The notes under the pieces were generated by a model. It worked only from the letters and a program-made list of their open reading frames with translations, made no database searches and was not told where the DNA came from. A stretch of 63,370 bases of DNA, counting the filler, from Reticulomyxa filosa (lineage: Eukaryota; Protista; Foraminifera): NCBI GenBank assembly GCA_000512085.1. It is 18 parts of 18 records of this genome, joined end to end, with 100 filler letters (N's around TTAATTAATTAA, not from the genome) between each part and the next. Parts side by side here need not be neighbours in the genome. Positions count along the whole stretch, not along the records: positions 41,271 to 48,027 come from ASPP01023962.1; 17 more parts are not named here. One strand, written 5' to 3'. This document shows, piece after piece, positions 41,171 through 48,027 of this stretch. The position numbers and the translations under genes are program-made. Each line of letters begins with the position of its first letter. Positions within the stretch are counted from its first letter, which is position 1.

Positions 41171-41327
41171 NNNNNNNNNNNNNNNNNNNNNNNNNNNNNN
41201 NNNNNNNNNNNNNNTTAATTAATTAANNNNNNNNNNNNNNNNNNNNNNNNNNNNNNNNNNNNNNNNNNNNTTTTTTTTTTTTTTGCATATTAGAGTTCAA
41301 AAAAAAAAAAAAAGGGATTGCCTCAAG

Positions 41328-41771
41328 TTAAATGCGTCCTCTAAACGGAACTAAATGTGAAGCGTCTGTAGTTCGGATAAACAACTCAATGGAAATGTCA
41401 TTGTTGTTTGCATCGTCGTCGTTTGGTTGGCTTTCGTCGTTGGACGGCTGGCGGAAAATACTTTGCTTTTCCAATTCTCTGACCACACTTTGGGCTGATC
41501 TTTTCGTCACCAATTTGTAGAGGGATTTAAATGTCTTCGTGTTGTTGATCTCTGCTCCTTTAAATGTTATTGTTTGCTTGTTCGGAGGAGACGGAAATTT
41601 GTTCTCGTCGTACAGCTTCTGCTTCAGGTGATACACACTCCAGTCCAAAGGCACATCCAAATCCAACCGAAAGTTATCCACTCCTTGAAGGCAGACGCGA
41701 ACCTTGGGAGGAGATTTTCCACTCACCGCATTTTCACCTTTTGCTATGATCGCGTTTTCTGCTGTTGCCAT
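41328..41771 (-). CDS. Ubiquitin-like domain protein
   Basis: VRVCLQG...LDVPLDWSVYHLKQKLYDE..FPSPPNKQTITFKGAEINNTKTF fits the UBL pattern (TV..LK..I.....P...Q.LI..G..L.D..TL). Confidence 0.72.
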   Translation of the reverse strand: MATAENAIIAKGENAVSGKSPPKVRVCLQGVDNFRLDLDVPLDWSVYHLKQKLYDENKFPSPPNKQTITFKGAEINNTKTFKSLYKLVTKRSAQSVVRELEKQSIFRQPSNDESQPNDDDANNNDISIELFIRTTDASHLVPFRGRI

Positions 41772-43206
41772 TATTTCTATTTTTATTTTTATACACTCCC
41801 TTTCGAACTTCCTAATCTTTTCTTCTGTTTGCTGAAGTCTGCAATATTACATATTCTGTGTCCATTTGTAGTCGCAAAGTAAATTTAAAATCTTTATCAA
41901 CTAATCCATACGGAGTGTTCTTCTTTTTTTGTTTTCTCTCAGCTGGGATGTTATATTGTAGACCCACACCTCGAACGTTTTGACAAAAATACATTAAAAA
42001 TAGAACCTATGTTATTCAGTTGTCAAAATTTTTTCCATTAATGCCATGCTCCGAAATTTTCAAAATATTGTAAATGGATGAGCTTTTTGGTTAACATTCA
42101 TCAATAGTAAAAATTTTAAGAAGTAACAAATTGAGAGTATTAATGGTTGTGCAAATGATTTTGAAAATTTGTGTTGTAAAATTGACAATGAAGGGATGTT
42201 CCTTGTCAAAAAAAAAAACACGGTAACGTATGTCATAGTTAATAAATTATTTTTTGGGATGCCAGTCATCGTCCAAGGACGAAGTACCAGTCAGCGAGGA
42301 ATCAAATCCTGTCAGTCCCTCATCCGATCCAAAAGTTTTTTTAAGATCTTTGCCGTCGCCAATCAATGATTTTGTAATAATTTGCATTCCCTCAATCCAC
42401 CGGTCGACACATCGACCAACACATTTCTTCTCGCCACTTCCTAAAGAGCTTCCAATTTTGTTCAGACATGATAAGAAACATCGTTCCGAAAGCTATTTTA
42501 TCATTCCAACAACAATGAAAAAAAGTAATAGAAAACGCGGGAATATTCTATCTGTTTAGCCACGTTAAAAAAAATTTAAGCTAACCCTCTTACTCAGTTG
42601 TTCGACTGTACTAATCAAATGTGCTTGTTGGAGTTGATTTGTCAATTCTTGAACATCAAATTTTTCTTCTGACATGGCTTTAGATTATCGATATTTTACC
42701 CTTTGAAGAACTTTTTACCTTAAAACTAGTTGGTACATTCACAAAACTCTAAAATGAAAAAAATTTAAAAATTACTGTCTCCAAAACTAATTTACAATAA
42801 ATATTTGTTTTTCATGGAGAAATCGATTATCTTAATAAGTAGCACAAAAGGTGTGACGTTTGCTTTTGCGGAACATATCTTTGATACACAATAGTTTGCA
42901 AAAAAAAAGGATAACTTGACGCAAACACTGATAGACTGAAAACAATCTAATGATTTTTTCAATGTTCTACACAGTGCAGAACTTAAACAAAAATGAAATT
43001 CGTGTACTGCATTAGTAAAACAAAAATTCCGTAAATAATGTAAATTATTGAATAATTTTATTTTTTGTCCCAAATAAAGAAAGTAAGAATGGTGTCACAA
43101 ATGGAGCAAATCCTGCACTCATCTTTTCAGAAGATCCAAAAAACATAAAATTATCCTATGTTGGAATATTTTTGTTGGCTCGTTTAGGTGTTATGCAAAT
43201 ATATGC

Positions 43207-44500
43207 CTAACTGTTTAGTTTCCATATCTGCCCATTATGATTTTTTGGTCTCCATATATGTCCATAATGACTTTTTGGTTTCCTTGTCTTTACATTAAAA
43301 TAGTCATCGAAATATTGTTTGCATGTATTGAACGAGTTATAAATCTTTTGATAATCAATATCTGCAGCAAATTTCTCAACTAGTGATTCAAGTGAGTCAA
43401 AATTTTGATATTTTTCCATATTTCCGCTTATCTTTGAGATAAAAGCAAACAATATCTTATTTCATTTCTTAGATTGTATGTATAAATAAAAAATAAACTT
43501 GTTTAAATATACCTTGTTATGTAATGTATCAAAATCAATAAATTTCACTTGACAAAACACATAGTTATTGTCAGAGTAAAACAACATATCCAGATTATGA
43601 CATGAATTTCCAGGTAATATTAGTATTATTCCCTCGATTATGTATTGCTTGGTAAGAACTATTTTAATCTTCAAAAATGAATAAGCTAATACTGTATTCC
43701 AATCATATAGAAAAAAGCTATTAAGCAAGTTGAAAAGAAATTGTTCTTGCTCAATGATGTAATAAAAGAAGTGACACATATATGCAGCATTACTTGACAG
43801 ATTGTTCTAATTTGAATAACTCATTGATTTATTTATATTGCATTATTAAATTTTTATTTTTTTGTTTTTGATTGAAAAATGCATTAAACACATGGTGTGA
43901 TTTCCAAACAGTTAATCAATATCTTCAACTTCCAGTCTTTGTCGTCATCACAATTATAATAATATAGAATTTCTTTACCTAAGGATATTCCTTTCAAATA
44001 AATTAAAGCTGGTTTGCTATTTGATTGTGTTTGTTTAGTTGCAGTACCTGTTGTAGTATATAATATGACTCATTGAACAAGTTTATAATCAATTGATGAA
44101 ATGAATTTCGCCTGTTGACAGATTTGTTTGTTATTGTATATTAAAAAGTGTGTTAGTTTCAAGTCAGATAAACATATCAAGCTTCAAGTGGTTCCAATTG
44201 TTGTTCTTCAACGATCAAGTTCGATAATCGTTACAATGAAACATATTTTTCCCACAAATCTTGAATACTTTTTAAAATACTATAAACGACGTTTATATTC
44301 TAATTCGTGAATTAGAACTAGTCCTTCTATGTGTTCGATATTCACATTTAACTAGTTTTCTTTTTTTTGAATTTATTTAGACATACTTTTGATGTCGCAA
44401 GCAAAGCTTCATCAACTTCTTCAACTCTATTGCTAGAAGCTGATGTGAAAAATCAATCATTACTTTATCTGCAGCTGCAGGAGATTGATTTCTTTTGTTT
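43207..44500 (-). pseudogene. Decayed intron-containing gene-family copy
   Basis: Protein-like fragments with stops. 43300-43620 is homologous to 45400-45750 on the opposite strand. Confidence 0.45.
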
Positions 44501-44708
44501 ATGTTAGCTCTTATTTCTTTTTCTCGAAATGTGAATGTCACATTTTTATCAGTTAATATTTCATTTATTTAATCAAATAAGCTGTGCTTGCAGCATCAAA
44601 AGTATGTCTTAATAAATCCAAATATATGCATATCTTATATTTTAATTTAATTTACATTAAAAATTATAAAATACATAAAAAAAAACAAATATGTAGATTG
44701 ATTCTAGT

Positions 44709-45800
44709 CGTTGTCCTCACATAATCGTTTTTGGTGATTCTGGTGTCGGAAAATCACACTTCGTCGATCATTATGCAGATACGTATTATTATGATAACAG
44801 TAATTACTAAAGAGTGGAAAAAAAAGATTTTTTCCTTTGACTATTTGTTTTAATGATCAAACAGCAATGTATTCACCGAAGATCGATAACGAATTTGAAA
44901 TGGAGACAATTTTACGTGTTTGCTTTTAATACTTTTTTTTTCAAAATATTTAAAAAAAAGAAGAAGAAAAAATATACCGAAAATAACTGAATTCACAATA
45001 TTGACATTAATAGTAATTGCAGCAGCATTAAATGACGACTATCTAAGATATCCATTTAGGAGATGTTCGTATATTTCTAAATTCGTTTATGAATCCATCA
45101 ATATTTGCAATGGAAGACATTTGTTGTGGATTAATTTTGTTGAGACTTAATGCATTGCGAATCTTGAAAGCGCTAAAATGAATCCATTTATTTATCCTTT
45201 TCTGATTTATGTCAACATAGTTAATATTATGATATTAATGTTTTTTTTAATTTGTATTTTATTAAAAATCAAAAAACAACAGATTTTTGCAGAATAAAGG
45301 AATAAACGTGAAATAAAATTTGATTTATCAAATTCAATTGAAAAGATTGATATTTGTCAAAATTTCGAAACTTATTATCTTTGCAATAAATTAGAACGTC
45401 CAGGATTATATAAATTTCCAAATCAAAAGGATTTTGATATCTTGCTTTGTTTGAAACAATATCGCAGTAAATCTTGTCAAAATATATTTATATCTTTCGA
45501 TAGAACTTGTAATGTATGTTTAAACAAGTTTATTTTTATTTTTATTTTTATACAAATAATTCAAATAAAATGAAATAGAATAATATAATATTGTTCTATT
45601 TTTTATTTCAAAGGTTAGCTAAATAAATAAAGTATATGATTTTAATATATTTGAATCACAGCTGATAAACCTGCTTCAGTTGTCGATTATAGCAAGGCCA
45701 CCACTTCATCCAATTCACGAAAAATGCCAAATGATTATGTTAATTGTCTTGACCAAAACGAACAGAAAACAGAAGATGAATACGATGATAAAAGTGAAAT
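44709..45800 (+). pseudogene. Decayed gene with small-GTPase (Ras-like) P-loop
   Basis: HIIVFGDSGVGKSHFVDHY (G1 motif) at about 44718-44775. No intact DxxG or NKxD was seen, and downstream frames are interrupted. Confidence 0.5.
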
Positions 45801-46541
45801 ATAAAATCATGAAATAGAACATTATGAAAGAAAACAAAAGTCAAAAAAAAAATTTATCTTTATTTGCTCAATATATACACAACTCAGAACAAAAATTCAA
45901 GAACATTATAATTTAATCTATGTTAGATATAATAAGTTGATCTCTTTTGGATCCCCTAAAAAAATGATTGAAGGATTTGCTTCATTCTTAATGCCTTTAT
46001 GGCATATAATTTATGAAGCAAAAATGAAGAATTGTCTGTTTCAGTAGGCTTGCATTGGTTAAAAGAAATAATTTGCTGTTTATTGCTTTGTTTCACTGAT
46101 ATAGTTTTACGTTTTTCCTTAGTTTGAATTTTTCTTCAAAAATTTGACAATTTAAACAAATGAACATGAAATACTATAATATTGTGATTGCTAAACAAAT
46201 CTCATTTGTTTTTGGTAGTTTATGGTTATCAAAATTATTTTAAAAAAATTAGAAAGTTTGCAGATTTTTTAATTCGCATTTCTGTTTGAGTTCCATCGCA
46301 TCATGTTCAATTTCAACTAACGTTGATATTTTATGCCAGTAATAGCGTTTACAATTTGCCAATGTTTTATGTTTACAAATTTCACTAAACGATTTTATTT
46401 TAACATTAACAAACACAGTAGCAAAGCACGTGTAAACATCTGAGGCTAGAATAAGTGTAATGCTTACTAGAAAGCAGAAAACTCACAAGTTGACTGAACT
46501 ATTTTGCTTGAAGTTTTTTTTTTACTCGGTTCCCTTTTGAT

Positions 46542-47482
46542 TTGCAGGAGATGTCGGAATTGAGTAGTGCGTTAAATTGGACAAGCATCCAAGTGAAAGA
46601 ATGGGTAGTAACAGGGAAATTAGGAGGTTTAACAGAGAGCGAAGCACATGAGTTTGGTAAGATTGTGGAAACACACAACATCAACGGTATGGCCATGTTG
46701 ACAATGACAGATTCAAAATTGGTTGAGTTGGGAGTGAGTAACCAGCATGTGGCTTGGACCATCCAAGATGCAGTTGAGCAACAAAAAAAAAAAGTTGAAA
46801 GTTCAATAACCCCCCTTTTTCCAAAAAAAAATGTAAAAAATGCAGATATACAGTTTATTGACGAGCGTGGAAACAAGTGAATGGCTGAAGTCTTTACATG
46901 GCACGTTTGTGTCAAAAGAATATGACAAAAGCGTACTAGCGAATGGGGTGGACATAAGTACATTGCATATCAGTTGCGACAAAGCATTTTTGCAGCAGGT
47001 GTTCACCACCGACGAGACCGAATTGCACACATTGGAAAATGTGTTATTGGCAATGAGCACCATTCGTCAAAACAAAATCAAATCGGGGGCGATCCATGTC
47101 GGCGGTGCCCCAAAGAAGGGTTCCACTGAAAAAAATACACCATTACTTGTAAATAAACAAATCAAAACAAAGCAAAGCAAATAAATAAATAGATATATTA
47201 TATATATATACATATATATAATATATCTATTTATTTATTTGATTTTGTTGTTTTGCAATGTGGAAATAGGATAAATATTTGGCATTGTACGATGACTTGG
47301 ACAAGTTCAACTCGTTCGAAGAACTGCAATCGCGCATTGACGAATTGATCGTGAGCGACGAGACGCAGTTGTCAAAGGAAGTCCAAAGCCTACCTTTTTA
47401 CGATACTGTGGAAATGGTGATCAAACACGAAGCATCGCTATGTCCTTACAACAATAGCAGTCATAGCCATAATAATAATAAC

Positions 47483-47551
<69 letters not shown>

Positions 47552-48027
47552 GGCCATAACACAAACAATATCAACATCAACGCCAATGGCAGCAGCTTCA
47601 ATCTCGGTCTAGGCAGCCATGCGCGGGTTCGCACGATAGACAACGAGAAGTCGGCGCCGCGCCATAACATTGACTTGGACTTGTTTTTCACGACGCAGCC
47701 GAACGAGTTGAACCAAGAGAACAAGTGTCAGGAGTTGATGGACTACATATCCACCACGCAAATTCGGACGCACTTGGCGTTGGACATGCTGTCCAACTTT
47801 GGCATCACCTTGAAGGACATTGAGGCGTTTATCAACTCGGACAAGGCCAACGAGCTGTCAGTCATCGGCTATCCCAATATGAACTCGTTTGTCGATTGCG
47901 CTCATTTCATTCGCAAAAACTATCGCAATTCCAAAGTCTTGGCTTTTGCTATCGTCGATGTGGACAACTTTGCCGAAGTGTGCAAGTTTTTAAACAATAT
48001 ATACATATATACATATATACATATATA
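46542..48027 (+). CDS. Tandem SAM-domain protein with poly-Asn linker and a putative GGDEF domain start, 3'-truncated
   Basis: SAM1 NWTSIQVKEWV...FGKIVETHNINGMAMLTMTDSKLVELGV; SAM2-like TSVETSEWLKSL...YDKSVLANGVDISTL; C-terminal ELSVIGYPNMNSF...LAFAIVDVDNFAE. Confidence 0.7.

Follow-up and report, generated by a model that had tools for sequence, protein, structure and literature searches.

Degenerate GGDEF domains are found in several bacterial proteins, among them the GTP-sensing PdeA (CC3396) of Caulobacter, PelD, PopA, LapD and FimX. In these domains the fold is that of GGDEF but the signature has been lost or changed, and they serve regulation or ligand binding, not synthesis. GGDEF domains are nearly all bacterial, and DgcA is the eukaryotic exception (PMC4686194, PMC10399225). 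DgcA of Dictyostelium discoideum is described as the first case of a putative diguanylate cyclase in a eukaryote (PMC4686194), and Dictyostelium is stated to be the only eukaryote that makes and uses c-di-GMP (PMC10399225). No paper on GGDEF in Reticulomyxa or foraminifera was found in the literature searches, and a SAM domain fused to a GGDEF-fold domain is not an architecture described in the literature searched.

The gene reported here lies in a stretch of 63,370 nucleotides, filler included, that joins 18 parts of one genome and is referred to as the window. The genome is that of Reticulomyxa filosa, a naked freshwater foraminiferan (Rhizaria). The 6757-base piece at window positions 41271-48027 is contig ASPP01023962.1 of assembly GCA_000512085.1, and its plus strand carries the 5' part of a multi-exon eukaryotic gene, of which three exons are in the piece. 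The protein encoded by this nuclear R. filosa gene would have an N-terminal SAM-like domain followed by a helical region; a poly-Asn linker would then lead into a highly diverged palm domain of the GGDEF fold, the remainder of which would continue past the contig end. With a probability of about 60%, the product is a scaffold or sensor in which a SAM domain accompanies a GGDEF domain with degenerate catalytic motifs, and not a c-di-GMP synthase.

The gene shares with DgcA the presence of a GGDEF-family domain in the nuclear genome of a protist. It differs in that the R. filosa family is highly diverged, that the catalytic signature is missing in the one homolog found (P0003, see below) and that the host belongs to Rhizaria/Foraminifera whereas Dictyostelium belongs to Amoebozoa. 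The loss of the signature seen in P0003 on a GGDEF fold is also what is known from the degenerate bacterial domains. In contrast to these, the R. filosa gene is nuclear, has spliceosomal introns and carries, fused to this domain, a SAM-like domain as well as a poly-Asn linker.

Gene structure, transcript evidence and the SAM-like region

The coordinates of the gene are given in Table 1. The NCBI gene call spans window 46551-47977 and has a partial product of 427 residues with no Pfam family on record. The preliminary description of this locus placed the start at 46542; this is corrected to the ATG at 46551, which has a stop in frame upstream of it and an acceptor-like tttgcag at 46541-46547. 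Each junction is of phase 0 and has GT..AG borders. The GC content is 42-43% in the exons and 16-29% in the introns, with 0.29 in intron 1 and 0.17 in intron 2 against 0.43 in the exons. An Rfam scan of the piece gave no RNA family match.

Table 1. Features of the R. filosa gene on contig ASPP01023962.1, in window coordinates
Feature	Position	Strand	Description
Exon 1	46551..46772	+	74 codons from the ATG; weak SAM-like domain at about residues 10-65
Intron 1	46773..46845	+	73 nt, GT..AG, phase 0; skipped in X1 record 1
Exon 2	46846..47148	+	101 codons; helical region, no family assigned
Intron 2	47149..47269	+	121 nt, GT..AG, phase 0; predicted from splice sites and phase read in the sequence
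Exon 3	47270..47977	+	236 codons; helical N-terminal part, Asn-rich linker, start of GGDEF-like domain
Asn run	47471..47548	+	26 Asn codons, (AAT)n; low-complexity linker
Start of GGDEF-like domain	47831..47977	+	first ~45 residues; GYPNMNSF, and the metal-binding Asp on the DVD strand
Start of intron 3	47978..48027	+	donor GTGTGC; runs into the (ATATATAC)n repeat and the contig end

Transcript evidence comes from a relative represented by the single public run found (X1), whose type is guessed to be RNA and whose contigs are about 93% identical to the window. The spliced contig of this relative (record 1) covers 46593-46772 of exon 1 and 46849-47140 of exon 2. It joins 46772 to 46849 with an ATG between them, which is the ATA of the window (46846-46848) with one substitution. 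Since the contig skips 46773-46845, exon 1 ends at 46772. The same join rules out an alternative 52-nt intron 1 (46794-46845). Exon 3 is covered by records 2 and 3 over 47307-47454 and 47612-47977. Record 3 (1146 nt, about 778 nt of them 3' of position 47977) follows the window as far as 47977, which places the donor at exactly 47978. Beyond this point it has other, coding-like sequence, of which the first 30 nt, in frame, read IIEMYGEEVH. None of the X1 contigs crosses intron 2, so that the SAM and GGDEF exons are not found together on one of them, and we infer the junction of exons 2 and 3 from the splice sites, the phase and the NCBI gene call.

The window and X1 have 40 listed differences, of which 31 are synonymous and 9 non-synonymous, and 28 of the 40 are at third codon positions. 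These proportions show that the predicted reading frame is under purifying selection. In the stretch of exon 2 covered by X1 (46849-47140), nine of the ten listed differences are synonymous.

Intron 2 consists mostly of a 43-nt AT-rich inverted repeat (47165-47207 / 47212-47254, 88% complementary, 4-nt loop), which may represent either a small foldback element or plain AT-rich intron sequence. Positions 47150-47249 were counted as repeat when the X1 contigs were aligned to the window.

Several claims of the preliminary description hold. The spliced X1 contigs and the R. filosa origin of the contig bear out a host gene with introns in a protist, and the poly-Asn linker that it described is the run of 26 Asn. 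The segment DKANELSVIGYPNMNSF-x16-LAFAIVDVDNFAE is present and forms the end of exon 3, and the donor predicted at 47978 agrees with the X1 contig. The domain is cut by the contig end, as was also proposed: the (ATATATAC)n tandem repeat occupies 47997-48027 and the contig stops inside it at 48027.

Of two SAM-like domains that had been proposed, the first stands with weak scores and the second is not supported. Exon 1 matches the Pfam families SAM_1 (PF00536) with an E-value of 0.0035 and 18.1 bits (threshold 23), SAM_2 (PF07647) with an E-value of 0.023 and 15.3 bits (threshold 20.5), and SAM_PNT with an E-value of 0.09, which is also below threshold. Against the PDB, five of the six best matches of exon 1 are SAM domains with E-values of 0.05-0.7 (Aveugle, SAMD12, ANKS6). 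These signals are weak but consistent, and exon 1 likely carries the first SAM-like domain. The SAM scaffold and adaptor proteins Aveugle/CNK, SAMD12 and ANKS6 are the best though weak matches of exon 1, but all exon 1 scores are under the curated thresholds.

In exon 2, there is no SAM match in Pfam (E<=10) or in the PDB, and an Atlas search gave no usable match. A comparison of exon 2 with exon 1 found no similarity beyond 9 residues. Exon 2 also has no similarity to the upstream exon of the contig that encodes P0003. The AlphaFold2 (AF2) single-sequence models of exon 1 (pLDDT 51) and exon 2 (pLDDT 44) are too poor for use.

Probable GGDEF fold at the end of exon 3

A phmmer search with residues 109-236 of exon 3 against 1.84 billion cluster representatives gave a single true relative, P0003, a protein of 200 residues with an E-value of 4.4e-4 at that database size. 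It is encoded on an 876-base contig (L001) of assembly GCA_024449935.1. In a pairwise comparison, P0003 and the window protein match with an E-value of 2e-12 and 31% identity over 104 residues, and the segment that opens the GGDEF-like domain is 45% identical to residues 105-151 of P0003. L001:221-823 aligns collinearly along the entire length of exon 3, from the first residue of the exon, while the poly-Asn run is absent from P0003 in the alignment along exon 3. The position and phase of the intron at the start of exon 3 are common to both genes. The acceptor position of intron 2 is conserved in L001, where tag is followed by D-D-Y (D-K-Y in the window).

Homology, collinearity and the common intron position and phase show P0003 to be a eukaryotic family member and not bacterial contamination. 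The conservation of the intron position with a homolog of only 31% identity argues for a long residence of the gene in eukaryotes and against a recent transfer or contamination. L001 is without intron 3 of the window, and its reading frame runs on into the domain until another intron, whose donor gtattcg directly follows ...ERNRFLVL. The upstream exon of L001 is in frame 1 and ends near L001:147.

Further homolog searches with P0003 and with exon 3 (residues 109-236) found only P0003, although the length window of these searches may omit the 427-aa NCBI model. Scanned against metagenomes, the family alignment gave 600 pattern matches, none of them a relative, and a degenerate DNA pattern for IIEMYGEEVH had 0 matches in metagenome contigs.

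The homology to P0003 makes it very likely that exon 3 opens a GGDEF-fold domain. P0003 matches the Pfam GGDEF family (PF00990) with 34.5 bits (threshold 23.8, E-value 2.1e-8), and the match aligns its residues 128-196 with profile positions 22-88. Residues 100-196 of P0003 match nearly exclusively diguanylate cyclase/GGDEF chains in the PDB, with a best E-value of 5.7e-4. The earlier proposal that the last exon leads into a GGDEF-like domain is supported in this way, through P0003. It had named PF00211 (class III nucleotidyl cyclase) as the family to compare with PF00990. Neither the window fragments nor P0003 match PF00211 (E<=10), and a match to PF00990 is found for P0003 and not for the window fragment itself.

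Searches with the window fragment gave little. A Pfam search with each exon and with the last 98 residues returned no GGDEF and no Guanylate_cyc match (E<=10), and a phmmer search of the fragment against the PDB returned only chance matches with no GGDEF. That the fragment alone is below detection is unsurprising, because it has only ~45 residues of the domain. A two-sequence profile (49 common columns) finds diguanylate cyclases in the PDB at the right position with E-values of 1.4-1.7, which are not significant. The Atlas language-model features of the last 98 residues place 21 of 30 neighbours in GGDEF clusters at ~0.90, which is a weak lead.

The same results bear on an alternative in which the C-terminal segment is not of the GGDEF fold in R. 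filosa, the likeness to P0003 extends only to one short strand and to the region upstream that the two have in common, and the exons further downstream code for a different kind of sequence. The lack of a significant GGDEF match for the fragment and the two-sequence profile is consistent with this, as is the overlap of only ~24 window residues with the Pfam-aligned GGDEF part of P0003. However, the IIEMYGEEVH of the 93% identical relative continues the alignment, pairing with TIDAYGEEVG of P0003 within the Pfam-matched GGDEF stretch, and the Atlas features favour GGDEF clusters. The alternative is very unlikely.

Catalytic residues and probable function of the GGDEF-like domain

The degeneracy of the domain was read from the alignment of P0003 to the cyclase 6zxb (DIDSYFETIDAYGEEVGN against DIDKFKNINDTYGHEIGD) and from the P0003 sequence. 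The positions D327, N335, D344 and E370 of PleD are taken here to be the catalytic-residue positions, with N335 and D344 binding guanine in the PleD structures. In known enzymes, one acidic residue of GG(D/E)EF is the second metal ligand. The first metal-binding Asp (strand beta-1, DxD) is kept, as DVD in the window and as DID in P0003, which aligns with the DID of 6zxb. The guanine-binding Asn (PleD N335 position, xxND) is Ile in P0003. At the motif ND.(Y/F)GH..GD, for which the preliminary description proposed to look in the continuation, the relative reads IIEMYGEEVH. When this is set after the DVDNFAE of the window, Ile takes the place of the Asn, and the conserved His is replaced by Glu. 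The guanine-binding Asp (PleD D344, GHxxGD) is Asn in P0003 (GEEVGN), and the relative's sequence stops at GEEVH, one residue short of this position. At the GG(D/E)EF position P0003 has ERNRF, where Asn and Arg replace the two acidic residues, and the inhibitory RxxD site, five residues before the signature motif, is VPNA. The GYPNMNSF of the window compares with the GLPNRRxF of cyclases and has lost both Arg; the register here is by eye and lies outside the Pfam and PDB alignments.

The GG(D/E)EF and RxxD positions of the window protein itself are beyond the contig end at 48027, and degeneracy of its signature motif is extrapolated from P0003 at 31% identity. On these residues, the GGDEF domain of the family appears to be catalytically degenerate.

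The preliminary description interpreted the gene as a SAM-oligomerised cyclic-dinucleotide synthase. An active diguanylate cyclase of this kind would imply c-di-GMP signalling in a foraminiferan, like that of DgcA in Dictyostelium. The homology to the GGDEF fold, the retained Asp of DVD and the SAM-like domain are all compatible with an active enzyme, and the window's own signature motif could still be intact past the contig end. Against this, P0003 has ERNRF in place of GG(D/E)EF, Ile and Asn at the guanine-binding positions and no RxxD. The much closer relative also has the Ile and Glu substitutions, and both Arg of NRR are missing from the N-terminal motif. The synthase interpretation is not supported by these residues and has very little probability.

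Another possibility is a palm-domain nucleotidyl cyclase or transferase that has been repurposed but is still catalytic, with a non-canonical substrate or product and activation by SAM oligomerisation. The start of the domain is strongly conserved between the window and the 93% identical relative (V198I is the sole change in residues 188-236 among the listed differences), the first metal-binding Asp is kept in both family members, and the changed base-binding residues could mean altered specificity and not loss. But P0003 has Asn and Arg at the two acidic positions of GG(D/E)EF, one of which provides the second metal ligand in known enzymes, and the literature searches yielded no precedent. 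A catalyst of this type is unlikely. A wider form of this idea, in which Foraminifera have a lineage-specific SAM-linked family of GGDEF-fold proteins that is functional in nucleotide signalling, is also unlikely. Its members would be either cyclases that use a new substrate or form a new product, or receptors of cyclic (di)nucleotides whose signalling works through oligomerisation driven by SAM. If such a family were functional, GGDEF-type signalling would extend to Rhizaria, past the single case of Dictyostelium.

The preferred explanation remains a scaffold or sensor with a degenerate domain. In this mechanism, the GGDEF-fold domain would retain the fold and the first metal-binding Asp, and the residues for binding GTP and for making c-di-GMP would most likely be lost, resulting in a pseudo-cyclase. 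The degenerate domain probably acts as a regulatory, dimerising or ligand-binding module, which would be tethered by the disordered Asn-rich linker to the SAM-like domain, which could mediate oligomerisation or docking. The role as scaffold or sensor is probable by analogy to the degenerate bacterial GGDEF domains. The analogy differs in detail for PelD- and PopA-type receptors, whose RxxD site is absent in P0003. An EAL partner domain is not present in the portion of the R. filosa gene at hand, which stops short of the 3' end.

The protein is probably a new eukaryotic variant of the GGDEF domain and a pseudo-enzyme. Since the evidence points to a pseudo-enzyme, the gene would not represent a second eukaryotic c-di-GMP system. 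It would be a modest case of a bacterial signalling fold repurposed in a protist, and its annotation as a diguanylate cyclase is inadvisable.

Other features of the contig

The contig also has a ubiquitin-like gene on the minus strand at window 41328-41994, with a match to Pfam ubiquitin (E-value 4.6e-7, 29.9 bits, threshold 25.4). This ORF at the left end of the piece is 100% identical to NCBI RFI_27718, a partial protein (208 aa) of Reticulomyxa filosa.

An ORF of 101 codons lies on the plus strand at 42254-42559, where the local GC rises to 0.36-0.40 from ~0.27 around it. Its translation is listed as beginning with MGCQSS but with TTG as the listed start codon, and the ATG is unconfirmed. 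If the MGCQSS start is real, it would be a possible start for N-myristoylation/palmitoylation. The ORF has no Pfam match and is not among the gene calls of the contig.

Two further gene calls, at 43207-44460 (minus strand, 271 residues) and 45089-46047 (plus strand, 192 residues), have 25-29% GC, no long ORFs and no Pfam match, and may be over-predictions. Within the first of these doubtful calls, a 30-nt tandem repeat occurs at 43210-43283 in 2.5 copies with 79% matches.
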